A DNA stretch of 64,000 nucleotides from Lytechinus pictus (taxonomy: Eukaryota), in contig NC_087248.1 of assembly GCF_037042905.1 (NCBI RefSeq), positions 4,092,001 through 4,156,000 of the forward strand, written 5' to 3'. A program made the translations under genes and the position numbers. Positions within the stretch are counted from its first letter, which is position 1, and each line of letters opens with the position of its first letter. The notes beneath the pieces were generated by a model that was not told the DNA's origin, ran no database searches, and saw nothing but the letters and a program-made list of their open reading frames with translations. Positions 29,121-61,127 of this stretch are shown piece by piece.

Positions 29121-32100
29121 ATGCCGGAAGGATCAGAACAAGAACTAGAAAATATGATACAAGTAGATAAGGAGGTAAGTGATCGACAGGATTTTATTTA
29201 TTCATTTTACTAGAATTAATAATTCAAATCTGATGCTTTTGATTCCATAACATTTCGTTCAATGAAGTGAGCACCCCCCCAAAAAAAAAAAAATGAAGAA
29301 ATTACTATTTTTTAACCAAGGCCAATTATTGGTTCTGGGATATAGACTTGGCATGGACAAATTCATATCGGTAATTCATTCAAAAATAATCATAGAAAAC
29401 AGTAAATTAGTGCACACACAATACTCTATTGCAATCGGTTAGTCAAAACTCATTGAGAAATCTTCAGATATGAAAAAAGAGATTTTTTTATCCCGAATAA
29501 CTCATTTACAAAAAAAAAACCTTCCTTCATTTTAGGACTATCTAACTTAATTTCTTTTTAACAAACCATCAGATTATCTAAACTTCGGACTGATGAATTT
29601 TTGGAATATTAAATCTTCTTATTATTCAAAGGTTCGGAATACGAACCCTGGGAAAACAATTGTCAGATTAATTTCAGATGCGGCTGTTGTTGTACAAAAT
29701 ACTGGTTTGCGGACCTGAGTGCTCTTGTCTGAGGAAAAAACATGAATATCCAGTAAATAATAAATGAATTCTTCATTTTCTAATATTTTCTAGATGATGC
29801 TTTTTGCGTTACAATCCACGCTAGAAAATGCAGAAGATGAGACCATCAGGAAAGAAGAATATCACTTTAAGTTGGTGACTTATACAGGTTTTGAACAACA
29901 GGTTAGTGCACCTTTTATTAATGAGTAGCTTTGAAAGAGAAGGATCTTTTCTAAATTATTATCGTATCACCGATCTGTGTATTGATATACAGATCAGTGC
30001 ATGATGTACTTTTTTTGTTTATGTAAGTAACTTTTTTATCACTTTTACTTCAACTTCTTTTCATATAAAAATTCCCATGCAATATCATCTAGGCCTACTT
30101 CAGGGCGATCCTCTTATACAAGTTTTCTCCCGGTGTCGATCAAGGGGAGAAGGGGGGGGTATATATATCCCCAAATATTTCAGGTGGGGAGGGCTTTTGT
30201 TATCATCCCTAATACTTAACAGTTGAACATCAGCCAACTTTATGAGGAATCATATGACAAGTGTGAAAAAGAAATTTCATGCAAGCACAGACTCAAATTT
30301 GACGGATCGCCAATTTCATGATAATAAAGTGAAAAGTAGACTCCAAACCCTTTTTGTGTCAGGCAGCCACAGTTCTATTCTCACTACTTCATACTCGGCA
30401 TTATGCATTATACGAATTAAGAAAATCTGTGCCTGCGGACTAATGATAGATTGTGGTATATGCACATGATGACCATCATTTTTTTTCTCTCTGAATTTTC
30501 TTAGGTTAATTGTTAATGAATAAATCGATTCCTTTCATAAAATTGTCAGAAACAGATACATGTAGGTGGAGGAAATATTCCAGGATGAAAAAGAATAACA
30601 TGTTCATTAAATGATGTTGAAACCAAATCAATGAATTCTCATTTTATCTGTCTCTCTTCTCCCCCTTTCATAACACTTCGAATGGATTTCCACAAAGTAT
30701 GGGTGTTTGACTGATGTCACGTTGACACCGGATCTCACTGAGGTAAGATTTTATTATCATCGTAATCATGGTAATTACGGGTGGGTGGGACAGAAAAAAT
30801 AGTATGCCTTTACCATGGCAAACATTTTCCTTCAAATTTGACAAATGTGTCGTATCGGCTTCAGTCCAGGTCCATGGTCCAACCTACTCAGCGAGACAAA
30901 CAGTCTGTATAATAAATTTGAAAAAGTTCCCCAATTTAGGGGATTTGGGAGAAGACTCGTTTTCCAAATGCACAGGAAAGGAAATGTGTGAGAGAGCTCT
31001 AGTTTGTATTGAGCGAAAATAAGGGGAACTGGCTTGATTCCCAAATTAATCAACGATTTATTGCGACGATATACCGTTAATACAGGACTAGACATTTGAA
31101 AGTCCTGGATTCAATCCCCGGCCACGGAACATTTGCCCGTGAGCAAGGAATATAATCATCAGTGCTCGTTTTATAGTCTGATTACTGTTTTTTCCCATGA
31201 GTATTTATTACTCAATGTCTCACAATGATTTGATTTGATTAGATCCCGGGGATTAGATTCAAATATGTATTCATTACAAACCACCTTGCAGTCTAAAGCT
31301 AATATACGGTGTATACGGGGTATGTAACCGTGGACATAATGCTACCATCTTTCCGTTATTAAAGACCTATAACTTTTTTTCGATTTTATATATTGTAATG
31401 GATTTGTTGTGATATAAAGTAATACAGTGAATATCAATATGCGAGCGAGCGAGCGAATTTTCAGTACTTCGAAGACAAAATGGTGTTCAAAACTTTTTCA
31501 AAGTGGTGTGTTATTACGAGTAGCACATTACGGGCAATGAATACGTATACAGTTTGTATAAAAAAAACGGTACAGATTTGAAAAGTCTATAAGATTTTAG
31601 TTTCAAATTATTATGTCTATATTTATTGTGTTAATTGGTGCTCTAAGGTCTTCTCTTTCAAATGCTATTAAAAAATTTAGTTTTGTTCATGCTTGAGGGA
31701 ACACGGGACGTTTTTGTTGGGGGTTCAAAAAGAGGCTTGCGCCAGAATTGCAGAATATGAGTAATATGATGATCGGACTTCTTGCTAATTAGCAGACTTC
31801 CTCTTAACCTTTTCATTATCTTTGCAATAATTTTCAAATCATGCGGTCAAAATTCATTTTCAGATCTATTTATTTGTTGAATTATTCTGTTATTTCTTTT
31901 TAATATGCTCTGTGTTAGCTTTGAATATTCCTTCTTCAAGCTAAAATTATTTTTTTTCAACCGAATTATGGGAGAGCATGGATTTTTATTCAAATCCTTT
32001 CATTATGTGCTACAAAGGTTATGGTGCCTTTTGAACAAAGCCACACAGATGGGCGGGCGCTCGGGTTGCTCCCCCCACTCAATTAAAAAAATCATGACCA

Positions 32101-35100
32101 AGAAAAAAAGTGGACAGGAAATAAAAGGAAAGATAGAAAGTAAAATATGATATTATTTTCTGAATATTATATCAAAATCTATCACAAAATTTGATATTGT
32201 GATTAAAAAAAGGGGGAATATTTGCGTGCTCACTTCGCTCGCTCACAACTTTTTTATACATTTTACCCGATCTGCCATATCTAGCTCTTTCAAAATTGAC
32301 TCAATACACCATTGTCATTGAAAGACATTAATCCCTTCCTGTGTTTCCTGTCAAGCAATTAAACTTGGTCAAGGAATTAATGACCCATTGAAAAATAGAT
32401 TCATGTCTTTTAAAGGTACATAACATAATTTGTTTCACATAATAAAACGATTTGAATAATCACAAGTTTTCCCAATTAATAATTCAAATCTTCTTGCTTG
32501 TGTCGAAAAAAAAATCTTCTTTTCTCAGTTACTTATGAAGGAAAATTAAAAGGTAAGAAAAGTTTAAATGAAAAAACAAAACAATTCAATTAAATAGATA
32601 ACTTTGTAAATGAAATTTGACAGCAGAATTCGAAAATTGTGGCACAGATAATGAAAAAGTCAAGAGGAAGTCTCCTGATTAGCAAGAAGTCTGATCATTG
32701 TATGGTTACACATATTCTGCAATTATGGCGCAAGCCTCCATTTGAACCCCCAACAAAAACGTCCCGTGTTCGCCCAAGCATAAATAAAATTTATTTTTTT
32801 AAATTGCATTTCAAAGATAAGACCTTAGAGCATCTATTAACACCATAATATAGACATCATTATTTGAAACAAAAATTTTATAGACTTTTCAAATCTGTCC
32901 CGTTTTTTTTATACGCACTGTATACGTATATTGTAAGTGTGTTTGTTATACTACCATCTTTCTAAACGGCCTATATTACGGTTTTTCGATGTGGATATAT
33001 TGAAATGGATCTGTCATGATATAAAGTTACGAATTACAGTTAATATCAAAATGCGAGCGAGAAAAGCGAGCGAGCAAATTTCCAAATTTACAAAGACAGA
33101 ATGGTGACCAAAAATCGTATTTCGAGGAGTGTGTAGTTATGGAGAAATGCAGCGAGTTAGCATAGAAATCGAGCCTTGAAAAAGTTGATTTAATCGTTAA
33201 AATGATGTGCATATACATGTATTACAATGGATGATAAAGGCAAATTATCAATAAATGAAACATTAGAAGAGCAGGAAAACGAAAATAAAGAGCAAATAAG
33301 TATCAAACAGTCCATGTTCTGTTCAATCAAAACTCATTTGCTCACTGGTTAAAGATGAGATAAGAATAAAAATAAATGTGATCATTATTATCAGGAATAT
33401 GAAACGATTATAGGCCATCGCAGAACACAATGTAAGCTTCGAAAAACATCGAAATAGCACTCAATGCAAACTAAAAGGAAAATATTGCAGGAAACGAATT
33501 ATTTTACAACATTCAACATTTTGAACAAAATTCATATTTGAGATATTTGATAGATTTTCATGGAATTGATACGATTTAAAGTCTCCTATAACCGGATAAT
33601 AAAGTGTGTGGGAAATATTTCTTTGATATTAAACGTGCCTCTGATGTGTTCCATTTGGTTTATGTTGGTCAATGTCATCAGTAACTCATCATACACTTTA
33701 CTTGAAGTATTCAGGGTATGCCTATATATTTTTTAAATATACCCCGCTTCCACAAAGATGAAAGGAAAATAATTATGACCCCCACATTCACGCCAGTACC
33801 TGTATTCAAACTATGTTTTGCTTGGTTTATGATCATTTTAAAAGTAAATGGTATTATCCAATTCATAAATTGATGTATTCTAATCAGACTCTCATTATGC
33901 AGGGGGAAATAACATTTGCAATAATAAGGCTAAACATGGTGATTTGTCATGACCAAAATCTTGTAAGATTAGTTTTTCATTTTTTATAAAGCAAAATTTT
34001 TAGACAAATTTAAGCAATTTTACCGCATTTAAAAATGAATACACCCATTAGTAGTATTAATTATCTGATGATAAAAAATCGTTCTGCCCTAAAAGTGGGG
34101 GGAGGGGTGATTGTACATGCCCCCCCCCTCTGCAAAAAATGGGGGATGTATCCCCTATCCCCCGGGATTTACGCCCGTGGTTGACGGGATGTAAAGGGTT
34201 TTACAATGTTAAAACGGAGCAGCAGCTGAGTAGACGAGGGATATTGTTGAGAATGAAAGATGAAAAATCAAAGGCCATACATAATATGCACATCCAATAC
34301 AAAATTACATAAAAATAGAAATAAGAAAGGATAGATTAAAACATCATCAAATCCGAGATTACGGTTTATTGAGGATAAGGTAGTTAAAGCATGGACCCTA
34401 TTCTGTCGATGGCCTAACAATGTTCTGTTGTCCTGTGTTTTCTTTAGATGGCGATGGGAAAGTTAACAGCATGTTTTGAAGCTGTAGAAGAGGGATTGAT
34501 GACCGAAGATGACTATTTTTTCGAGCTCATATCACCTTTCTTCTTTTACACCGTAAGTATGTGTCATAACAAAAGAAGGTATGTTGTTATTAGTAAGAAA
34601 TGAACATTGATAATAATTAAGTAACATAATTATTCTGATGTACAAGACAGTTGTAAGAAGATTCTCCAAAATAAGTATGTTAAAACAAGAAAATATGAAT
34701 CTGAACTATTTCCCTTTTCAGTATTACGGCATTTTCTGCGATATTCATATCATTTAATTTAGGTTGGTTGAATTTTAAATTCCTTTTCACAGATATATTG
34801 ATTGATTGGTGGTGATTTTTTTACCTGATTGCTAAGAAAGCACGAATGCTTGTAAGCAAGCAACCAGAGGACCGACGGCTTAAGGTCCTCTCCAAAGGAC
34901 CTGGTACTGAGGATTAATGCCTTACCAAAGGGCACTAGCGCACCAAGTGGGAATCGAAACCGGGTCACCGGAATACGAATCCCCCGCTCTACCGACTGAG
35001 CTATCACGCCTCCTATATAATTGATGTGGCGTTCGGCTTGACAGAGATGAAAGTTTATATTGGATTGAAAACAATTACTATACAAATCATTCCATTTATC

Positions 35101-38100
35101 ATATTATTTCAGGGTTTCTTCCAATTTTTCTTCATATCTTTTTTAATTTGTCTCTTTTTTTAATAAAAAGATTTTTTATTGACTAACGAGACTATTACTC
35201 TCTAAAATACCCAAATTGAAACATGCAATAATCATTGATAATAAAGAAAAAATATACGCAGATAAGTGATCCATAGATAGATATGCCCTTTTCATTCACT
35301 TTTTGGGTCACAATTCTGATACTTCTTTGACACAATACGTTTTGACGATTTAAAACGAAAATCATCCGGTTTAATTTCATAGCGTTATTTATCAAACAAT
35401 TTTTGCAGTGAATTTTATATATGTTAATTTCTCTCTCACTTCATTATTTCAGTCAGGAAAATACAATCAAACAGACCAACTTCTGACGACAATGTCAGCT
35501 TTGTCAAAGATATCCAACTTTCAGGTAAGGTTGAAAAAAACATTGTCTCAGTTTCTTTCTTTTAACTATAAATAAAACTATTTTTACTGTACAATCTAAG
35601 AACTGTATATACTGTATGTAATAATATGTATCACCTGATTCATTTTTATTCGCATGTATGTTCAAAGGATGAAGAAAATGACACAAATGATCTGAATGCA
35701 TTTCTGATGTTGAATGAACCTAACGATCTCGAGGAAAACAGACTTTTGCAAATATTGATACCAAATCTACTTCCTTATTGATTTAATGTTCTTAATTACT
35801 CTAATGGGCAATAGCTGTAAATGGATAATTCCATTTAGATGTGTTTAATGACAAGAAAAAAGTCGGATCAAGAATACTTCTTACAGTTTGGACACAATAA
35901 AGCCCTATATTGGGCTAACACAAGTGTATGTTGTGTGTCACTAAACCATCAAATGGTATTTGTAAATTTAACGAAAGAAGTTAAAGAGAACTGACTCTTT
36001 AAATTTAATGTTTATCACCGTTTGTAAATAAAATTGTTCTTTTGGTCACCTTTCTTTAAATAATATTCTGTCTATTGTGTTCTTTTTTAAATTTGTCTTT
36101 TTTGTTATTTTACAAGCTTTACGATTTATCTTTTTATTTTTAGTGCTCAATGCCTATTTGAAGTTGTTTGTACATATTGAAAATAATGAAATGATTATTA
36201 TGTTTCTCTTGTTTCCTTTTAATTCGCATGGTATGCTTGAAGGACGAAGAAAATGTGGAAGAAAACATTTTTATTGCATTTCCGGTGTTGAGTGGACCTT
36301 GCGATCTCGAGGTAAACAGACTTTTACACTGGGGTACAGATGGAAGGGGGCTGGGGGGGGGGGGTGGTGAACTGTGTCATCAGTTACTTAGTCAATTACC
36401 TCATTTTGAAATAAACCATCTCGGTTTTCATTGGCTATCCTGTCAAGGTATTTTCGTACATTTTATCATATTCTTGTACATGTAATTAACGAGCAAAAAC
36501 CTTTTTCTGTCCAGACATCATTGATCAAGGAAAGGTCTACTTCCAAAGATCCGATCTACCAAAAGACGAGAATCCGTGATGTAAGTATATGTCATATTCG
36601 TTTTTTATACCTTATCTGTGTTTAATACTGTATTGAATCATAACATAACATTTCAGATTAAAAATTATAATCCTGGAATAAAATGTTTCAAGGCTAGACG
36701 ATTTTTTAGACCATGATTGTTATTTCAATACTGGGGTCTGATAATATGCGATCAACGAAAGTTTTATTTATTAAAAAAAACAGATAAATTTGCATGGTCA
36801 TAATGCAATGATTCTAGTAAATTACTATTATGGGATATGAATTGAATAAAAATCATATAAACAGACTAAGATGAAACAGAAAACTGGAATTTCATGAGGT
36901 TCCGATAAAATTCGAAACACTTTAATATTATATTCAATAAGTGAATAGATGGCATATTTATCCAAAGACAATACCCGAGTAGGCCTACTCGATTATGATG
37001 CAGAAAACAATGATGACGATGGTGATGATGATGAAAATGAATATATTAGTATTAATGTTACATTGATTTTTGATAAAAGTAATGATAATATAGCAGGACG
37101 GTAACATGTTGTAATATTATCGATAACAATAATGACATGCAGTTCTAATGATAATGATGACAATATTAGTAACAATAACTACTAAACCATATGTAATGAT
37201 GTGAAAACAATTATAGTAATGCAATAGTTAGAAACAGTTACATATACTTGATAATGATATAACTATTTATATCAATAAATTATCAATTATATATCTTTTT
37301 ACTTTTGAATTAACTTTTAATATATTCATTCGTTATTACTTCACAGAAAAAAATCGATTTCACTTCAAAAGAGATGATACAAGTCGAACTGAATCAGCTT
37401 CACCACGTCTTTGGGGTAAATATCACGTAAACGGGGACATATGAAGTTAAAAGGAAAACATGACAGTTTGCATATAACCGTTTTCACAGAATGCTGCAAA
37501 ATTTTAATATTAAATAACTTTGTTATTTGTTATCAGATTTTGAAAAATTTTTCCTTATATTCTGCTCTTTGGATTTTAATCTATATATTTAGATATAATT
37601 ATTTTTTAGCCCCGATATATCCATTTAAACGCTTTTAGCTATAAAACATGCATGTGTCCACATCTATCAAAATATTTTTTAAGCCAAGAAACGTATATCA
37701 AATAATTAATTTCGAGTAGCAAAACAATATTTGAATGATTATGATATGAATTCGTGGATGTGCACCAAGAATTGCATGTGATCGTTTAATATCCAAGATT
37801 GCACTGAAGAACTTTGAATTAACATTAATCTTTAACGATTTTGTTAAATCATAAAATGACAATCGTATATCATATTCAGGTTGATACTAATTGATAATTG
37901 ACTAAATAGTTAATTTATACTAGGTATACAAGGCATGTAGACTATGTATAAGTAGAGACAGTAAATATTTTCCTCATAATGCACAGATAGGTTGAAACAA
38001 ATAATCAAGACAGCTCTGTTCTTTTATGATCTATCTGTCTCTCTAGAAGCGCTCAGTTGGCGGAAATACGATATACATTTGGATGGTCTGTATGCTATTG

Positions 38101-39816
38101 TATATCCGGATTTTTTTTACCAAAGTACTCAAGGTAAACGTACTAAGATCAAGTATTATTTTGCTTTCAAAACAACCATACCAGATATGGGCCAAATACT
38201 AAAATATCCAGTAGTCGGAGAAAGACCTCCCAATCTCATTCTCATTGGAAATAGTTTTTTTTCTGTCCCGGAAGTTTTTTTTTCCTTGGTAAATAGTTGG
38301 CTGCTATGATGATAATGATGATGATCTGCAGCATTAACATTTCTGTTAAAATGCATTCATATGCGAATAGTTGATCGAATCAAGTTTATTTCTACACATT
38401 TGCTGAATGAAGTGAGTTTTGAGGCATGATTAGGCATAGAGCTAATAAAGCACATATATAATATTATCAATTAAAACATTTTTCTCTAAGCCGATAGAGA
38501 CAATCTATGAAATAAGTCCCGACCACAAAAAATAAGTGCTAAGACAGACCAGTTACTAAGTATACTAAGTACCCGACCACAAAAAATAAGTACTAAGACA
38601 GACCAGTTAAGACTGTGCCGATAGAAACAATATCACAACCTGTATTATTTATTCATGATTTATGTTATTTCAATCGCATATATCCTGCACACTATTATTG
38701 GGTTAAATAGTTGTAAAAATGTGCATGTGTCAACTATCTGTTCAAAGGAAATCACAACAGCAGAACAAGAATTGTGTATACTCAGGATAATGAATAATAA
38801 GAGAAAGTTATTTCCCCCATCATGAACGATCATATTTACTCATTTAATCTTTATGATTTTTTTTTTTTCTATTTCTTCAGAAGCTATTGGTTGGCGGGAA
38901 TTCGAAAAACATTTCGATTATCCGTTGGCTGTCTGTGCTGTTATTTCTTGACAAGTGTGCCGTGGCAATCCCCGTAAACACAGAACATTCACCCGTAACA
39001 CTTACTGCTGGTTCAAATGGGATCGTTCCTTTTGCTTGCAGAAAAACAGATCCATTCGCAGCCAAATACTACAGTCTTCAGCTGGAAGGGAAAGATATGC
39101 CATTTTACGTGGATGGAGATTTTTTCTCGGATGGGCTGATGTCAACAGATCAGGTCGAAAGATTCAACGTGGAATTTGTTGAAAATGATCAAGAAATGTC
39201 AATAGAAATTAATATTGCGCAGGTTTCCGTTGAAGACCAGGGGACATACATTGCTATACTCATTGTCAAGGGGGATACGACGGAGTCTCATGTCATGAAA
39301 AGAGCTGTCATGATAGTAATTCCGCCAGGCCCAGCGATCTGTTTCTTAATGCCAAGTGAAATTTATCCTGATAGACATGAGATACACTGTCACTCTGAAC
39401 GTGGAAGTGGCAACTCGACACTCACTTGCTTTCAGGAAAAGGACAAGATACCATATTTTCAGATTGGGAAAGATCAGAGTGATTCGCAGGTGGTTTACAG
39501 ACGGCGATTCTGGATCCTGAATATAAATGTCACAGTGTATTGTTGTTCTCATGATATTAAAGAAATTGAGAATATTAAGCAAAAGTCATGTAACCAATTC
39601 ATATTCCCCCCAGGACCGGAACCAGAACCAGAGATCAGTACAACCTTTAAGCCTTACACACCGACTGAAATTGCACCAATTACAAAACCTTTTTACATGG
39701 AAGAAAATAACAATCCTTCCTCTGAAGTTTATTCTATTTCTGGAAGTGATCGAAATATTGACAAGTCCTCTTTAATCATATCTCTAATGTTTTCAATCAT
39801 TTACCTTATCATGTAG
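29121..39816 (+). CDS. Paralogue A: multi-exon N-terminal module + internal signal-like segment + V-type Ig domain + 6-Cys domain + GPI-signal-like C-terminus, about 507 aa
   Basis: join(29121-29174,29794-29901,30698-30742,34448-34552,35453-35524,36243-36311,36515-36580,37347-37415,38881-39816), optional extra exon 38047-38133. All AG/GT flanked, all lengths multiples of 3, stop-free, phase 0 and in frame with ORF 38887-39816. Homologous to paralogue B in the first four exons and the last. Probable non-coding first exon ends at the donor at 27531. Confidence 0.8.
31550..32920. mobile_element. Tc1/mariner-like non-autonomous element with long inverted arms
   Basis: TA|CAGTTTGTATAAAAAAAACGG ... 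CCGTTTTTTTTATACGCACTG|TA; arms remain inverted homologues for about 300 bp (e.g. GAACACGGGACGTTTTTGTTGGGGGTTCAAA vs TTTGAACCCCCAACAAAAACGTCCCGTGTTC). Confidence 0.85.
34796..35013 (-). mobile_element. tRNA-derived SINE (second family)
   Basis: Minus strand GGAGGCGTGATAGCTCAGTCGGTAGAGC (A-box), GGTTTCGATTCCC (B-box), then about 140 bp of non-tRNA body and a (CAAT)n tail. Confidence 0.85.
35668..35733 (+). pseudogene. Duplicated exon with GA in place of the GT donor (probable pseudo-exon of paralogue A)
   Basis: DEENDTNDLNAFLMLNEPNDLE is homologous, including flanks, to exon 36243-36311 (DEENVEENIFIAFPVLSGPCDLE); donor reads GAG|GAAAACAGAC versus GAG|GTAAACAGAC. Confidence 0.6.
38518..38609. 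repeat. 38-bp direct repeat, two copies
   Basis: CCCGACCACAAAAAATAAGTRCTAAGACAGACCAGTTA at 38518 and 38572. Confidence 0.85.
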
Positions 39817-46528: not shown

Positions 46529-48306
46529 TACTCTCCTGCCCATAACGCAAAGTTTTTTTGTTTTTTTTTGGGGGGGGGGGGGAATTACAGAGAAACAAAA
46601 TGATAACTTTGATTGTTATTATAAAAGGATATTGTATCGGATATTCGGAATTGAATGTCTGATCTACTTTGAAAAGATCGTTTCGGAAATAAAGAGGTTT
46701 GGATGCAAAATAGGTGGTGTGGAAAGAGAGAGGGGGGGGGGAGCGAGGGGAGAGAGTGAAAGCGATAAAAAAATAGAGGGAGGAAAGGGAGAGTGAAACG
46801 ACAACAAAAGAGTGCGACTCGCATGTAACTCCAATAGCTCAGTTTAGTCTTGAAATATACTTCTGTTTGTTTTGATACTTGACCATAAATTACCTTCATC
46901 ATGATTTTAATCTGTCATCAGATAAACGAAGTTAAACATTGATAGAATATGTAATCACAATCAAATTATGTTTATTGAATTAGCCGTCAATAATTATCTT
47001 CTTCTACTATGACCCATGCAATGATTGCTCCTATAAAATCAATGTAAATATGATAATACACTACTTTCAAGAATCACAAGGTTCAGATTGATATCTCACA
47101 CCATTTCGAAATACTGAATCGAAAAATCCCTAAGCACTAAATATGGGAGCCGCAAACATGATGTAACCGGGCGTGAAAATGACGAAAAGAGCATGTAGTT
47201 ATCGTCGCCTACTACTTTGCCTAACTTAATCTTAACTTATTTTGTTGGCGTTACTTGAGAGGAACATTTTCTAATTTGTACCCTCGTCTTATGTTTGGCC
47301 AGTTTAAAAAATAATGTCATATTCTTTATTCAGGCCAACGCAATTACTCTCCATAAAAAAGAAAATGGTAAAAATTGTACCAGAATGTTAACCATAATTC
47401 ATTATGGTTCATACTGTCACGATTTGAACCACGATTCAAACGTCTTTCTTAATCGTGATGTAATCGTTATGATCTTATCAGATCGTAACAGATCATATCA
47501 GATCAGTCGTGGCAATCGTATTGAAAGTAGAATACTTTTCAACAGTTAAAAAATCGCGATCTGTTACGACAGTGGGAACGAGGAATTATCAAGTTGACGT
47601 ACGATCATGACGGTAGTGGCAGAGGGAATAACTTGCGGTTATTAGCTTGGAGTTCCCACCCCTTTCCAAATAAAAACAGTGCTTGGGAGGAGATCAGTGG
47701 GTGGATAATGGAGTAATTATGTCACTCCAAAGAAAATTCAGGTTATTTTTTATCATATGCAAATTCATTTTTCTTCTTTAATGGAAGAAGCGTGCTCACC
47801 TGAAATTCAAATTATTGATTTTTTAAAATAAAATCTTATGCAACAGGTCAAAGGTGAAGTAAACTTTAATAACATCTCTATATAGACTTCGTAAAGACTT
47901 GATAACTTATACATGTACATGTATGCTCTAAATACCCATAATAATACTATGATGAGGCAATGACCCTATAGACACAAACAAGAAGAAAATATCAACAACA
48001 ATTCAACAAACATTCTCAAAGCAAAATACTGTGACTTTTGCGAGGCTAGCTCTTCGTCATGTTGAAATGAATACCCAAGTTTACATATTAAACTGATCAT
48101 CTTTCGTGCCTCATGTGTTGCATACATATTAAATGTTCGATTTCTCTTCTCATTTATCCGTCTAATATCTACAGGTACAAGAGTGTCTCAAAATGCTAAA
48201 TCTAAGATATAAACATATCATGTGCAACTAGCTTTCGAAAACGCCGAACTTACTCTTTTGAGATCAACGAGTTCATCTAAAAAGAAGCATTATATACTAG
48301 GAGAAT

Positions 48307-51300
48307 ATGGCTGCCAATACTACCGTCCCACATGCTAGCGTACGCGGCAAATTCAAGGCAAGATATGACCTGCAGAAAATGAGGTTTGAAGTGGAAAGGA
48401 TAAAAACATTTAAAACATGGAGCAAATCATGTCCGATTCGACCTGCACCTCTTGCGAAAGCTGGCTTTTTCTACGTTGGAATATTTGACTTAGTGGAGTG
48501 CTTTTCCTGCAGAGTTCAAGTTGATAAGTGGAAAAAGGGACAAACCGCTAAGGGTCGACATGAAGAGAAGAATTCACTATGTAAGATGGTGAATAATGAG
48601 GAGAAGTTAAATATTACGATTGTAATGTGGAATGAAATGAAGAAGTGCCTTCAGTCAAAAAGTGAAACTGATGGGGAAGTGGTAGTGAATCAATCCGATA
48701 CCAGAAACTTGATCACTCCAGATGATTATGTAGACGCTTACTGTGGAACATCTTTCTCTGGAAGGTTGTCATTAGCTAAATATCCGGAGCATACAGGGGA
48801 ACTAGATAGACTTGACACCTTCCGTGATAAGTGGTCAGACGAATTCAATTTGCCCTCCTCAGCCCTGAGGTGGCTGGCCAACGCTGGATTTTTCAAAGAT
48901 GGTATGATAATAAAATAATAGAATATTAAAAACAGGTTTTTTATTAATAAATGAAATAATTAATGATTATTTGCAATTAATTACTTTCGTTTAATGAATT
49001 ATGGGCGTCACACTAAATTTGAAGGTTTTGGGTTTTTTGCTTTTTTGTTTGTTTTGATTTGTTTGTTACTGTATTTTGGGGGGGTGCCTATAACCTGTCG
49101 CCTCTCCAGCTACTTTAAAAACGTTATACCTTGTTATATTGCTATCACTCCTTTCCCCGCTCAGGGACTACTACTTCTACTTTCCGGAAGCATGTATTAC
49201 AATTACTTTAACTGTTCAACTTTGCAGGTCCTGGTGACAGGGCTAGATGTTTCTATTGCGGTGGTGGTGTTGAATGCTGGGAGGAAGATGATGAACCTTG
49301 GTGTGAGCATGCAAGAAACTTCCCTACATGCACATGGCTTCTTGGCATGAAGGGCGAGGACTTCGTCAATGACGTACAGGTGAGTTATGGATCTCAGTCT
49401 CTATTGATATTTCGTATTCTCAATTTTGATCGATACCATTGGTTCATTTGAACTTTTATGTAATATATTGTTCGCAGCCCATTGGCTGAATTTGTTAGGT
49501 TCTTGATAAAGACGTTCATTATCATTCCCAACTTAAAATGCGTTAAATTAAGTCTATCCCGAATGGTGAATTGTATGTTGCTGGTACATGTATTACATAA
49601 TGTTTTATAGATTTAAAACCCTCATCTTCGTTATTGGTTTATTTTTGTTTTCTGCTTGTTTGCCTTGCTTCTTGGAGTCTACAGTGATATGTATCTTAAT
49701 AGTTAATAGACGATTTTCTTAACTATTGTGGGCAATCTCTCCACAATGTTTGTCCATGTGTTAATTTTATGTGGTCTTCTTCATTTATTGAATGTTTTGA
49801 AAATTACAAATATATAAATTATCTATCCATGATGCATCAAATTTAGAAATAACCTATGACATGTTTCACAGGATTACTTTAAGAAAAAGAAAACACGCGA
49901 GGAAGAGGAAAAGAATTCCGGAGACACTTCAACTGCCTCTTCGCTGAATCACCAGAATGCTCCTGCGTCAGTCCCAAACAAGACAGGTAATGATGCTCAT
50001 GGTAGGAATGTACGATGTTTAGATGTGTTGCCCCAATTCAATATGCACCCTACACATAGTGCTATTAAGTAACAGAGAAAAGTTTGGTTGATGTATAAAA
50101 GGGACATCATTAGAAGGTTGATTTAAATCAAGATTGTTCAAGATTTTATGTATAGTGCACCGTAATTTTATGGTGTTTTAGTGTTAATGCTGATTGTATT
50201 CGGATTAAACATAAAAAATACTTCTAACGCATGAGGTTTGTTAAAAATATACAATTTTTCAGGACAAGTGTCTGCTAATGACTTAGTAAAGATGATGGAC
50301 AGCCCAACCGTGAGAATCATTCTCAAGACTGGATTCGACGCAGCTCTTGTATGCCGCGTCCTCGAGGAGCAACTGCGTCAAACAGGCATCGACTTCTCAT
50401 CTTCAGACAACTTCATCAAGGCTTTAGAGGCAGAAGAGAAGACCAACCCGAAATCTCCAGTGCCCAATATTGAGATGCAGGTGAACAATATTGAATATAT
50501 ATTGCTTTTGTGGTACAGTTATATTGAAAATATGATAATAATAAATATATTGAAAATAAGAGGAAAAGCAAGAATAACCAAATGAAAAACATAACCAAAT
50601 AATGAATAATTTACGTCACTCTTACTCCTAGAAACATGAGTAACAAGCTTGCAAATTACGAAATGTCTCATCAAAAGCAAGAAATGGAAGGAAGACAATG
50701 TCAAGACTGAGGTTTTTTTCATTTAATTACACAGACTCAAAGGCTTGCTGCCATTCAGATAGACGGTAGTCACAGACAGGATCATTCATATAACACTCGG
50801 TCGGATCAAAACGGCTTCGGCACGTCAAGATCTTCAGTTGTTAATCGTGAGTAAAACTTTTTAGGATGGGATGGAGAGTACGGGACGGAAGGTCTATATT
50901 TTTTAAGCTTCTGAATATGACGTTTTATCCATTGCATATTTACTATGCCTACGTAGAATGACTTCGAGATAAAATTAGATTAAAAAACCCTTTAATTGGG
51001 TCTTCTTTTCAGATCATCGCAAGATTTTGACAATCCGGAAACATATCAATTTTCTAACTTAATGAATAGTTCTATCAATAGTTTTAACTGTTATTGTATC
51101 TGTCAGGTGCACCCCTAGGGGTGCAAATTGAACCCTTTTTCATAGTGTGTGGTGATTTATCAGTTAGATAATTATGTAAGACAGCGAAACATTTTGCATT
51201 ATTCAAAATATTATTAAGAGGTTATCTGCTCGAACTTCTTACAACAAAACTCATCTTCTCGACATTGCAGAACCCTTGCCAACCTCACCAAGGACTGGGT

Positions 51301-56267: not shown

Positions 56268-56603
56268 ATGGGAAGGAAACCGCAATCACAAGAAAGTACG
56301 GATGGGGAACAAGTCGGAGAGGAGGTAAGAATTTTTTTTATACTAATATATTTTATCGTCATCATTAGTAGTATTAATAGTAATATCATTAATATATTTA
56401 CAAATATTATAATTGCAATTATTACTATATCATTATTATTGTGATTGGCATCATTATCGTCATGACTATTCTTTGTTTATTATAAGTGTCATTATTATTA
56501 CTATTATCACAGATTTCGTTATTAATATCGTTATCAATTTTTTTTAATTATCATTTTAGTAGAAGCAGCAGCAGCAATATTAGTAGTAGTAGTATTAATA
56601 GAA

Positions 56604-56639
<36 letters not shown>

Positions 56640-59600
56640 AGTAGTAGTAGTGAGTAGCAGTCATATTATTGTTGCAATTTCTATTAAGTAATCGTCATTC
56701 ACTTTTGATTGTTTTTCAGGCGATGTTGGAGGCCCTGGAATTAGCGGTATTGGCCGTACGAGATGGAAGGATGCAAAAGCACGACTACTATTTCAAGTTC
56801 TGTACTGCTGATTCCAATGAATATGTTAGTCAAATTACAATTTGTCCTAAAATCATCTAATCCTGAAGATTGATACTGAACGATTATTTGAGGAATCGTA
56901 CCTTGTTTTTTATACAGTATATGCCTAGCCTTGTGACGTCATACATAGTTTTTTTTTAGTTTACGTCAATTTAAACTCCTACTGAACGATTATTTGAGGA
57001 ATCGTACCTTGTTTTTTTATACAGTATATGCCTAGCATTGTGAAGTCATATATAGGTTTTTTTTAGTTTACGTCAATTGAAACTCCTGAAATATTAATCG
57101 TATTACATAACTATGATTGATTTCTTTATCAGACCATTTCAATTCTGTGTAGCAATCGTAGTCGCTATATGATTACGATAGTTTCGATTCGAATAGTCGC
57201 ATATTTGTAAAGAATCATTGGTAGTTGGTTGTAATATATCTCTATTTATCTCGAGGAAACATCACTAATCTAAATATGCCATTTTTATTCCTGTTTGAAA
57301 GGCTGGAAACTGTGAAAGGAGATCAAATAGGAGTCGGGAACTCAGTAAAGAGGTTAGTAGATTCCTGGTTTCGGATGTTATTTCTTGCAATATTTTCAGA
57401 AATTGAAAAAGAAAGTTATACAATTGGTTTCAATAGATCAGCTGTAAAATAAATAACAGTTTTCAAAACGTTCGAGAATGTTTATAAGTTGTAAATATCT
57501 AAAGACATATATTTGTGTTTTGTTGAAATATTTTTGAAAAGATGCTGATCACATACATAAACGGGCGTATCATAAAGAAACGGTAGCGGTGTTGTGGCTT
57601 AGTGGATAAGTCTCCAGACTTTAAACTGCAAGGCCAGGGTTCAAATCCCACCACAGCACTCGCAACGCGTTTATCTACATTTGCCACTCTCCACCCAGGT
57701 GTAGGAAATCCTTGAATGCTTGAGGGTCCGATCAGGATAGCCGTGTTAAAAGCCGGGCTAATAGTATGCAGCGTTTAGAGACAAATGTCATTTGATGTCG
57801 CATGCATTATTATCATTATTATCTTTGCTGCATGTTTGGCAGTATGGATCTGTCTGTGTTATTAAAATACCTATATGTTCATTATACAGATGTTTGAGAT
57901 GGTTGAATCAGCATTTGAAGCAGTTGGAAACGGATCTTTAAAAGAAGAAGACTATTACTTTGAACTCACTACACCTTATTGTCAGTACGAAGTAAGTTGT
58001 TAAAATCGCTAATTTACATACATATATCAAGTTACTTCATTTGAATGGAAGTTCATGCCATCTCTTTGTACCATCTAATATTTTTATGTACATACTCGTT
58101 CTCTTAAAAAGCAAATTAAAGTATTATGTAAAAAAAAAAAAAAAAAAAATTGACTTGCAAAGTCTGGTATCTCCCGCCCCTTTTTTTCGCCTCTCTATTT
58201 CTGTCGTCATCACTGAATTCTTTACTTCTCGAAGAGTCTTGAATTGTAAGTGGGAATGGAGCCTTACAACCCCATATATATTTATTTTCAAAAAGACCCC
58301 CAAAGGATATATGATAGAAGGAATAAGGTATTGAGACATATTTTTCATTAAACTATTCGGCACATATCGTACAAATTTACCTCTTGGCTTGTTGAATACA
58401 ACATTTTTAAAGTGAAATAAAGTGTTTAATTGAATGAAAATGATTTTTTCATTGGCAAATTGGATGCAAATATATGTATAACAGTCCAGCTACATTTATT
58501 ATCATTATAATACATGTATTCTTCTTTCTTTCTCAGTCTTTCTTTCTATCTTTCTTCTTCGTCTTATTATTATTATCATTATTAATATTATTATTGTTAT
58601 TATTATTATTATTACTACAATGTTTATTATCTTCGTCCTTTTCATATCAAAACATTGTCCTTTCCAATAGTCAGGCTGCTATCCACATTATGATAAAACT
58701 ACATATTTGGAGGATCCACAAGGGCCTGAGTCATTCAGAATCTGGGTAAGGGTATTTTTTATTGGCAAAATACGAATAACCGAATCAACAGTAAACAATG
58801 AAATATGCATTACATAGCTACGCATCATATAGTCCTGGGTGATTTGAGCGCTCCGTAAGGTATACAAAAAATATAGTTTTGATAGAAAAAACTGAATTAT
58901 AGGAAGCCAAATGTGTATTGCAATCAATTTACCTAAATCAATACTTAAATTCGCTAACCATTGGCTTTATACACATTTCAAATGTATAATGATACCAGAA
59001 AATATTACACTATATTCGCGCGGTACGCCTTCGTCTTGGTCTCATGTCATAGTTTTTAAATAAACCGACTCTATTAATAATTCTCTTGAACTAGTGCACA
59101 TTGTCTTGTCGTAATTTAACCTCTAACGTTTCAATTTCACATTAACCCTACCCTTCACTTTGAAATGAACTAATAATCAATTGTATCATGAGTATGGAAT
59201 ATTATTATTAGTGCTTATAATGATATGCTATTATATTACTTAATATTGTTGCTAAAGATAATCTCTTTTGAATCTAAATGAAAAAAAAAATCATACAAAA
59301 CTCTGGCCTGACCAGTAAAATAATTTTTAGTTAAACCCCCTAAAGGCAAACATCACTAAGGGATAATTGCAAAGTAGATATGACTGTGTATCAGTATTAA
59401 GATATACTTGCTGAAACGTGTATTAAAACAACATCAGGTTCATTGCATGAAATGCTTGGGATTTTCCCTTTGTAATATGAATAACCACAAACACATATAC
59501 CATGATGATTATTATACAGGATTACATCTGTCCAGTTGGGTCGCAGATCAAGGACTTTGTGAAAGATGGATTACCGTATCAGCTTACAGGGAAGATGGTA

Positions 59601-61127
59601 AGGTTATCATATGTAAAATATAAAAACAATATAATCACGATACTGAACATATTAAGATCGGATGTTAACATGTAATTTATGCCATTTTAGATTTGTGCTT
59701 ATTCACAATATAATTTAATGTAAATTCAAAACAAAATAGATATTAAAAAAGAGGTAACTATGTCATACAAAGGTTATTTTTTTTGTATTATGCAATAAAG
59801 TATTATGAAATAATGAAAAATACTTAAAAATATTAATTTTCATATCATATACAAAAGGATTTCAAATTATCATTATACAGAATCGCTTTCATTTATATTA
59901 TTGCATCATGTTTGGCTATAAAACGTCTATGGTTAGCGTTAACATCCAGATTAACTATCCTTTCCCATTTCTACTTATAAAATTCCTCAGAAGTTGGACA
60001 GACCCATGAACGCCATAAGCATCACATTGTCTACATCAAGGTTCTCAATTCGATTGTTTCTGGTACTTTCCGTAATGATGATACACACAACACCATCAAG
60101 TGCCAGGGAGGAACCACCCTTGACACTGACTGCCGGGCAAAGTGGCGTCATTCCGTTTGGGTGCAAGAACAAACAACCGTCTGCGCCTAAATACTACACC
60201 GTCAAGTTCGAGGACAAAGACCGTCCTTTCTACATAGATGGACATTTTTACCCTGAAGGACTGATGTCATCGGACCAAGCTGAACGATTCAACGTGGAAT
60301 ATGTCGAGAACGACAGTGAAATGTCTATAGAAATTAATATAGCCTCTGTCTCTGTCGAAGACGAGGGGACATACATCGCATTACTCATTGTCCAGGGGGA
60401 TACATTTGAGTCTCATACCATGAAAAGAGTTGTCTTTATATTCATTCCTCCCAGCCAGGCGCTTTGCTATATAAGGCTCAGTGGAACTTTACTTACACAA
60501 AACAGGCCTACGATTCATTGCCATTCTAAACGTGGAACTGGTAATTCCACTCTTAGCTGCTTTCAAAAAGGCGACAAAATTCCGTTTTTTTACAATATTG
60601 ACGATGAAGAGGGCTATTCTCAGGTAGTTCACAGACGGAATTTTCTGCTCATGGATATAGACAGCCCAGTCTTTTGTTGTTCTCATGACATAAGCGATAC
60701 TATTACTCAAACGTCATGTAACCAATACAGATTTCCCAACAAATACCCTAACATTAGCACTACTCTCAAACCTCCGAAAATTGCTACAGAAAATGTGCTG
60801 ATAACAAGCTCAATATCCAAAGTAGATAAAAACATTCCGCCGTACACTGAATATCCTTCATATTCTGGATGTGATCATAATAGTAACCGGTCTGCTCTTG
60901 TCATCTCTCTTGCCGTGCTTTTCATTTATGCTTGCATATCGAATCCCCAAAACAACCTCGCAATGAAAATGAAGTTCATGCTTTGTCTCTTTGTATTTTC
61001 TTTCAATTCATTTTTACCAAAAATTACCGATTTAGAAAACAAAGTTCGATGCACGTTTTTAATGTCTGCTTTGATTTTTTTTTTCGGTGGGTTTAATGGG
61101 ATTGCTATTTTTTTTCGAACACTTTAG
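56268..61127 (+). CDS. Paralogue B: multi-exon N-terminal module + internal signal-like segment + V-type Ig domain + 6-Cys domain + extended hydrophobic C-terminus, about 534 aa
   Basis: join(56268-56324,56720-56824,57302-57352,57890-57991,58671-58745,59520-59597,59991-61127). All introns GT-AG, phase 0, in frame with ORF 59994-61127. Ig region strongly similar to A (GLMSxDQxERFNVE, EMSIEINIA, SVEDxGTYIA, ESHxMKR). Probable upstream non-coding exon ends at the donor at 54585. Confidence 0.82.
56874..57088. repeat. Tandem duplication of about 107 bp in a paralogue B intron
   Basis: ACTGAACGATTATTTGAGGAATCGTACCTTG..AAACTCCT occurs twice head to tail (56875 and 56981). Confidence 0.9.
57582..57822 (+). 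mobile_element. tRNA-derived SINE
   Basis: A-box GTGGCTTAGTGG, B-box GGTTCAAATCCC, CCACCCAGGTGTAG body, (ATT)n tail; same family as 61283-61545. Confidence 0.8.

Follow-up and report, generated by a model that had tools for sequence, protein, structure and literature searches.

Sea urchin genes encoding an N-terminal module upstream of an internal signal-like segment and an Ig-like ectodomain with a GPI-type tail

A stretch of 64,000 nucleotides (nt) from the sea urchin Lytechinus pictus (RefSeq assembly GCF_037042905.1, contig NC_087248.1, positions 4,092,001 to 4,156,000 of the forward strand; hereafter called the window) contains two genes, here designated A and B, in which a series of small exons precedes one large exon. 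The large exon encodes a hydrophobic, signal-like segment, two immunoglobulin (Ig)-like domains and a tail resembling a signal for attachment of a glycosylphosphatidylinositol (GPI) anchor. The two genes lie in tandem and belong to a small family that was encountered in camarodont sea urchins alone (three species): among 5.8 billion proteins, the homologues found were exclusively “uncharacterized” proteins of L. pictus, L. variegatus and Strongylocentrotus purpuratus. The C-terminal 373 residues of RefSeq LOC129259683 (P0001, 534 residues) match the large open reading frame (ORF) of gene B (60006-61124) with 100% identity. The large exons of A (38881-39816) and B (59991-61127) share 54% protein identity, in an alignment that starts only downstream of the hydrophobic segment. 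Exons were mapped by tblastn and by exact spliced mapping of database proteins onto the window, and orthologous loci of L. variegatus (L001 for A, L002 for B, L004 and L007) and S. purpuratus (L003, L005 and L006) were compared. A first-pass annotation of the window, made from the sequence alone, had not recognized this architecture from any described Ig family. This was a fair assessment, given that all members are named “uncharacterized protein” and that no publication on the family was found, either by topic or by six LOC identifiers. The architecture is already present in RefSeq as uncharacterized models, and it is undescribed in the literature searched.

The small exons of gene A (the exons and ORFs described here lie on the plus strand unless stated otherwise) number eight, encode 196 residues in total and coincide exactly with exons 1 to 8 of RefSeq XP_063954945.1 (LOC135153937, P0014). 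Exon 1 (29121-29174) carries a start codon in an adequate Kozak context (A at −3), with an in-frame stop 51 nt upstream, and encodes an acidic peptide without a signal sequence. Exon 2 (29794-29901) encodes repeat 1 of the N-terminal module (N-module), predicted to form a helix and a β-hairpin. It is followed by a 45-nt linker exon in phase 0 (30698-30742), which is conserved in L. variegatus with intact splice sites, and by the exon for repeat 2 (34448-34552), which contains the motif DYFFEL and is the most conserved part of the module. Linker cassette exons in phase 0 (35453-35524, 36243-36311 and 36515-36580) lead to the last small exon (37347-37415), which contains an in-frame ATG at 37374. 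A duplicate of cassette 36243-36311 lies at 35668-35733; its donor reads GA in L. pictus and GT in L. variegatus. This cassette is therefore probably dead in L. pictus, in what looks like species-specific exon death. The large exon (38881-39816) encodes the signal-like segment (38911-38967, with a predicted cut after 38967), a V-like and a C2-like Ig domain, a Ser/Thr/Pro-rich stalk, the GPI-signal-like tail (39739-39813) and the stop codon.

All eight small exons of A have lengths divisible by 3, are in phase 0 and are bordered by AG/GT sites. Any subset of them would consequently be in frame with the large exon when the latter is read from its acceptor at 38881. The first-pass annotation had joined the eight exons in frame to the Ig exon. 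Its exons, phase and splice sites were borne out, whereas the junction 37415 to 38881 is absent from the sole public model of gene A. The corresponding acceptor is used by the model of the L. variegatus orthologue (P0008), in which the repeat 2 exon is joined directly to it. As had also been noted, the large exon of A has no ATG ahead of its hydrophobic segment, and the same is true of the L. variegatus orthologue. What had been overlooked is the in-frame ATG at 37374 in the last small exon, from which a short precursor, still with a long n-region, may be translated. An extra exon of 87 nt (38047-38133) is located between the last small exon and the large exon. A second hydrophobic segment is encoded by this exon, which resembles the beginning of the Ig exon as a duplicate that has since diverged; in L. 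variegatus, its reading frame is likewise open and its splice sites are intact.

The exon map of gene B corresponds exactly to the RefSeq model of LOC129259683, with six small phase-0 exons (156 residues) and the large exon. Exon 1 (56268-56324) has its start codon in a strong Kozak context, with an in-frame stop 27 nt upstream. The exons for repeat 1 (56720-56824) and repeat 2 (57890-57991) are separated by a 51-nt cassette exon (57302-57352), which is present in the L. variegatus model P0003 and absent from P0002. A linker exon (58671-58745) and the last small exon, also a linker (59520-59597), precede the large exon (59991-61127) with its signal-like segment (60006-60104, with a predicted cut after 60104), two Ig-like domains and GPI-like tail ending at 60947. 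The claim that this paralogue has the same layout as A holds insofar as a module of 156 residues is joined in frame from 59597 to 59991, as in RefSeq; what had been missed is the ATG at 60006, directly before the signal. It is situated 15 nt past the acceptor in a weak context (C at −3), and a start there would give a conventional signal peptide of 33 residues. Gene B has lost its stop codon in this assembly, reading CAA at 60948-60950 where L. variegatus has TAA, and the ORF runs on to 61127. As a result, the GPI-like tail of B is no longer C-terminal here. The 59 added codons are not conserved as coding sequence; the corresponding 3′ untranslated region (UTR) of L. variegatus shows frame-breaking indels between the species. 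The loss of the stop may be genuine, polymorphic or the result of an assembly error. Between the two genes, at 47652-47714, a short fragment resembles the start of the Ig exon (R-R-S-V-G-G) before it runs into a stop, and is probably the remnant of a further duplication.

The small exons of both genes behave as coding sequence. All 14 have lengths divisible by 3, are in phase 0 and have GT-AG sites in L. pictus, L. variegatus and S. purpuratus, and no stop codon interrupts them in any of the three species. In L. variegatus, every small exon has an open frame and intact splice sites, and the exon indels measure 3, 9 and 6 nt; in S. purpuratus, introns interrupt the frame at the same positions and again in phase 0, and the repeat exons are likewise 105 and 102 nt long. 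The two Lytechinus species align throughout, introns included, at ∼80–92% identity (exons 0.75-0.97, flanks 0.81-0.93), and flanking introns have diverged by ∼0.10. As the two species are too close and the region evolves fast, conservation of exons relative to introns is uninformative here, and a comparison across genera is needed. Between the two Lytechinus, the ratio of nonsynonymous to synonymous substitution (dN/dS, Nei-Gojobori) of the concatenated small exons was 0.47 for A and 0.52 for B, compared with 0.32 (A) and 0.64 (B) for the large exons; the pooled synonymous and nonsynonymous counts gave a Fisher p of 0.005. A ratio near 1, or stops in the orthologues, which the first-pass annotation had named as marks of a 5′ UTR, were not seen in the small exons. 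Across genera, the proportions of synonymous (pS) and nonsynonymous (pN) differences between repeat 1 exons and S. purpuratus were pS 0.65/pN 0.41 and pS 0.67/pN 0.21 (the latter for exon 2 of A), and the repeat 2 exon of B differed from that of S. purpuratus P0007 with pS 0.84 and pN 0.23. Amino acid motifs are common to paralogues that are saturated at synonymous sites.

These data bear on the simplest alternative, namely that the small exons are a noncoding 5′ UTR or chance frames and that the N-terminal extension is an artefact of choosing the longest ORF. The exons are conserved about as well as the introns between the two Lytechinus, as such a view would have it, and an in-frame last junction, taken singly, is only a 1-in-3 event. 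However, neither a UTR nor chance would be expected to yield 14 of 14 exons divisible by 3, indels in multiples of 3, open frames in three species, pN well under pS across genera, motifs shared by synonymously saturated paralogues and a confidently predicted fold (see below). The 5′ UTR reading was rejected because of this phase and length pattern, the open frames in the orthologues, the cross-genus excess of pS and the predicted fold, and we regard it as highly improbable. Judged from these sequence comparisons, the small exons are coding and under purifying selection, beyond what chance would produce.

The core of the N-module consists of two conserved units of ∼35 residues, each encoded by one exon and marked by the motif D-Y-[YF]-F-E-L. 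Their relationship to each other shows in 43% identity over 28 residues. Downstream of the repeats follow linker exons, which are poorly conserved and variably included in the manner of cassettes. AlphaFold2 modeled the 196 residues of the A module (12 sequences) with a predicted local distance difference test score (pLDDT) of 85-93 for residues 20-110, in the order helix, β-hairpin, helix, β-hairpin, helix; the remainder was of low confidence. The modules are net acidic (25-37 Asp plus Glu versus 15-20 Lys plus Arg), have few cysteines and lack a hydrophobic leader. No Pfam family matched the N-module, a profile search of PDB sequences gave no match, and a Foldseek search of PDB and BFVD returned nothing better than E = 0.07 and a template modeling (TM) score of 0.25, with the qualification that the model was used untrimmed and its low-confidence tail may depress the scores. 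A profile search for the module in other proteins, which the first-pass annotation had suggested, covered 1.84 billion representative proteins and recovered nothing credible beyond the urchin family, the remaining hits being three weak, repetitive, spurious-looking matches. The module is therefore best described, as far as the model can be relied on, as an orphan, lineage-specific folded domain.

An EF-hand is a helix-loop-helix with a 12-residue calcium-binding loop, and a degenerate pair of EF-hands was considered for the two repeats (G at loop position 6, an acidic residue at position 12). The candidate was discarded, as there was no Pfam match, each unit is predicted as a helix plus β-hairpin without a second helix, and neither sequence nor fold matched an entry in the PDB.

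The module keeps its place at most of the other loci. Of the seven that were read, six contain module exons, in each case on the strand of an Ig exon and upstream of it, the arrangement also seen in A and B; at the seventh (P0009, L005), none were found within 10 kb upstream. The RefSeq annotation is inconsistent across the family. Thirteen models contain the Ig ectodomain (P0001-P0012 and P0022), 10 of which include the N-module and three of which consist of the Ig part only (P0004, P0006 and P0009), and a further three models (P0013, P0014 and P0015) consist of the module only. As read from the DNA, the layout is nevertheless real, unusual and conserved across urchin genera.

The ectodomain appears to be a divergent but ordinary-looking pair of V and C2 Ig domains with weak similarity to JAM and CAR. 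Pfam V-set scores stayed below the cut-off of 26 bits, the best being 23.8 bits (E = 5.3e-5, P0012), with 15.2 bits for A and 14.5 bits for B. A family profile of the ectodomain matched JAM-A (E = 2.6e-4) and CAR (E = 7e-3), both below the family thresholds, in an alignment that covers the V-domain F and G strands and extends through the linker into the first part of the C2 domain. The first cysteine of the V domain is invariant, whereas the canonical D-x-G-x-Y-x-C reads D-Q-G-T-Y-I-[A/V], the second (F-strand) cysteine being replaced in all members. An AlphaFold2 model of the A ectodomain reached a mean pLDDT of 38, with strands in the first domain, and was too poor for a fold search.

A GPI signal is generally made up of small residues at positions ω to ω+2, a polar spacer of ∼6–10 residues and a hydrophobic tail at the very C-terminus. 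In the urchin family, S-G-[C/S] is invariant in all 13 aligned ectodomains and is followed by a polar spacer of 6-9 residues and a hydrophobic end of 10-17 residues, with 0-4 residues after it. By these rules of thumb, the tail is predicted to be a GPI-attachment signal, B in this assembly being the exception. The GPI-signal-like tail that had been pointed out in A therefore stands.

The hydrophobic segment between module and ectodomain sits 90-250 residues into the reading frame. In 12 family sequences, its longest uncharged run is 7-14 residues, and the best 19-residue window amounts to +0.9 to +5.9 kcal/mol, unfavorable for membrane insertion in all 12; these values are simple sums on the Hessa biological scale, a heuristic that weakens rather than excludes a membrane anchor. 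In the Lytechinus genes, the uncharged core comprises 8-14 residues and is broken by Arg, Asp or Lys, and every 19-residue window lies between +2.1 and +5.9 kcal/mol. Basic residues precede the core, and small residues occupy positions −3 and −1 after it in every member (c-regions S-S-A, A-V-A, A-E-A, V-R-A, V-G-A and T-E-A), which for A and B confirms the small-x-small sites reported earlier. The segment cannot be aligned between A and B, whereas both of its flanks are conserved; it evolves freely. Because of the short core, the preceding basic residues, the small residues at −3 and −1 and this free evolution, the internal segments look like cleavable signal peptides rather than membrane anchors.

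Signal peptidase can cut internal signal sequences, and its efficiency reportedly falls as the n-region lengthens (PMC13578380). The latter argues for a different topology, in which the segment remains uncut and serves as a type II signal-anchor, giving a tetherin-like protein in which a membrane span connects the cytosolic N-module with an Ig ectodomain that is GPI-anchored at its other end. The conserved GPI-like tail would suit such a double anchor, as would the cores of some S. purpuratus members, which comprise ∼18 mostly apolar residues (P0011, P0006 and P0009; lowest window +0.9 to +2.2 kcal/mol). It is harder to reconcile with the charge-interrupted cores of 8-14 uncharged residues in Lytechinus, where all windows are unfavorable, with the small residues at −3 and −1 in every member and with a segment that evolves like a signal peptide. 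By the same heuristic, a stable uncleaved span near the N-terminus, as in tetherin, was found in none of the 12 sequences. We consider the double anchor improbable. Of the two topologies put forward in the first-pass annotation, a type II protein anchored at both ends and a polyprotein cut by signal peptidase, the latter is the more probable in view of the short cores.

The reading we prefer, quite possibly the correct one while still falling short of even confidence, is that the long isoform is a precursor with a recessed, cleavable signal that would give rise to a cytosol-facing fragment and a GPI-anchored two-Ig protein. Translation would begin in exon 1, and the N-module would be made in the cytosol. 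The recessed signal would target the nascent chain to the endoplasmic reticulum with the N-terminus inside, as basic residues precede the core. Signal peptidase would most likely cut after the core, since the latter is short and small residues are found at −3 and −1. The N-terminal fragment would be left facing the cytosol with the signal core as its tether, from which signal peptide peptidase might later release it; the Ig protein would end up GPI-anchored on the cell surface. The ATGs in exon 1 of A and B have good context, with in-frame stops just upstream. Moreover, P0007, P0012, P0022 and an isoform of P0008 have no methionine between repeat 2 and the hydrophobic core, and in these cases the N-terminal extension is therefore unavoidable.

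A rival that we rate as clearly less probable, without being far-fetched, is that module and Ig protein are separate products. The Ig protein would be translated from an ATG near the signal, either from a downstream transcription start or by leaky scanning, and the N-module would be made apart, from transcripts that end early or read on out of frame; the long fusions in RefSeq would then be minor isoforms or model merges. An ATG is indeed present just upstream of the signal in B, P0005, P0006, P0009, P0010 and P0011 and, in A, in the last small exon, and there are both short RefSeq models (P0006 and P0009) and module-only ones (P0013, P0014 and P0015). The S. purpuratus model P0006 (LOC100889709) starts at the ATG just before the signal and omits intact module exons 2.5-4.5 kb upstream (L006:5487-8046); this is due to either two isoforms or a shortened model. 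Conversely, the module-only L. variegatus model P0015 (LOC121412462) is followed 5.5 kb downstream by an Ig exon outside any called gene (L007:21999-22886), which is intact, with at least 295 codons, a GPI-like tail and no ATG before the signal. Other features fit separate products less well. There is no stop between the module and the Ig frame in any member, and the module was never found apart from an Ig exon. The Ig exon always begins at a conserved acceptor, implying that it is always spliced to something upstream. The internal ATG of B is weak and lies behind the strong ATG of exon 1, and P0007, P0012, P0022 and the P0008 isoform would have no usable methionine near the signal from which to start.

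Several points nevertheless weigh against the long precursor. All exon joins rest on RefSeq models and sequence logic; the Logan/ENA fragments P0016-P0018, which were checked as possible transcript copies, run from exon into intron where their DNA could be retrieved and are uninformative on splicing. Ordinary precursors would result from starts at the ATGs near the signal, which are present at 60006 in B, at 37374 in A and in several relatives, and some models contain only the module (P0013 and P0015) or only the Ig part (P0004, P0006 and P0009). The path of XP_063954945.1 leads from 37415 via 38047-38133 to 39042, an acceptor inside the large exon of A, and the Ig exon is thereby read out of frame, with a stop at 39182. 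Exon 38047-38133 and the acceptor at 39042 may represent an alternative “signal exon”, a nonproductive isoform or a model error. Furthermore, dN/dS between the two Lytechinus species is only moderately under 1, and the Ig exon of B is conserved no better than its introns. Finally, the n-region measures 90-250 residues and contains a folded domain, and cleavage efficiency reportedly falls with the length of this region (PMC13578380).

The surroundings of the two genes contain further coding sequence. Upstream of A, exons at 11730-12065, 13000-13377 and 21362-21763 strongly match the apextrin C-terminal domain (Pfam ApeC, E = 1e-24 to 6e-27) and point to at least two apextrin-like genes; at L. 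variegatus locus L007, an ApeC gene likewise lies upstream of a family member. Between A and B, an ORF at 48307-48918, perhaps extending to ∼50585, encodes a BIR (inhibitor of apoptosis) domain (E = 1e-19). On the minus strand, two adjacent ORFs (18420-19909) together resemble a fragment of a retrotransposon without long terminal repeats (non-LTR), the upstream one (18989-19909) matching the Pfam reverse transcriptase family RVT_1 (E = 4e-35). Threonine-rich sequence that looks coding borders a run of N at ∼9340-10300, which is either a gap or masked.

What the genes mean for cell biology depends on which product predominates. If the long ORF is translated as written, the family would be a natural test of the distance by which a signal can be set back behind a folded domain without losing targeting and cleavage, and of whether the piece left over has a function of its own, with a bearing on internal signal sequences and the selectivity of signal peptidase. 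A further-reaching possibility, which we offer tentatively and hold to be rather unlikely, is that one animal ORF serves as a precursor for two working products: the signal peptidase cut would yield, on the outside, a GPI-anchored Ig receptor and, on the inside, a folded, lineage-specific domain, at first tethered by the signal core and subsequently released to act alone. Cassette exons and alternative starts would then tune whether the inner product is made. Such a gene would parallel, on the cellular side, the functional signal peptide of viruses of the Rem type of mouse mammary tumor virus (MMTV), with a far larger, structured cytosolic part. If, on the other hand, a short precursor is the main product, the case reduces to a family with unusual coding upstream exons and inconsistent annotation. 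The genes also define an orphan domain and a small, fast-evolving Ig family. Neighbors encoding ApeC and BIR domains in sea urchins fit, and do not show, a role in recognition or immunity.

Parts of this architecture have counterparts in known systems. Functional long signal peptides of the NtraC type (PMC2447879), the 98-residue signal peptide of MMTV Rem/Env (PMC8725593) and the recessed signals of Plasmodium (PMC10900883) all have an extended region before an otherwise ordinary h- and c-region, and the urchin sequences likewise have an n-region of more than 40 residues, a short h-region and small residues at −3 and −1. In long and functional signal peptides, the N-terminal part is located on the cytosolic side and can act on its own after cleavage (PMC2447879, PMC8725593 and PMC13578380). 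The urchin proteins differ in that the region before the signal comprises 90-250 residues, compared with 40-100 in the cited cases, and in that it is a predicted folded, duplicated domain with exons of its own, cleavage and any function being putative.

With tetherin/BST-2, the family would share an ORF that runs from a cytosolic N-terminus through an internal hydrophobic segment and an ectodomain to a GPI-type signal at the C-terminus. However, the Lytechinus segment appears too short and too polar for a stable span, the ectodomain is Ig-like instead of a coiled coil, and there is no sequence relationship. Members of the CTX/JAM/CAR group have the same two-Ig ectodomain of V and C2 domains, which aligned weakly at the V/C2 junction; in contrast to them, the urchin proteins have a GPI-type tail in place of a transmembrane helix and cytoplasmic tail, the F-strand cysteine of the V domain is replaced, and the signal is internal, whereas JAM and CAR carry ordinary N-terminal signal peptides. 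GPI-anchored proteins of the Ig superfamily also have Ig domains and a stalk between a signal sequence and a C-terminal end composed of small residues at the putative ω site, a polar spacer and a hydrophobic tail; the urchin family departs from them in its additional N-terminal module and, for B in this assembly, in the 59 codons that follow the tail. The urchin architecture would combine a recessed or long signal peptide and a GPI-anchored Ig protein, both known, with an orphan folded domain.

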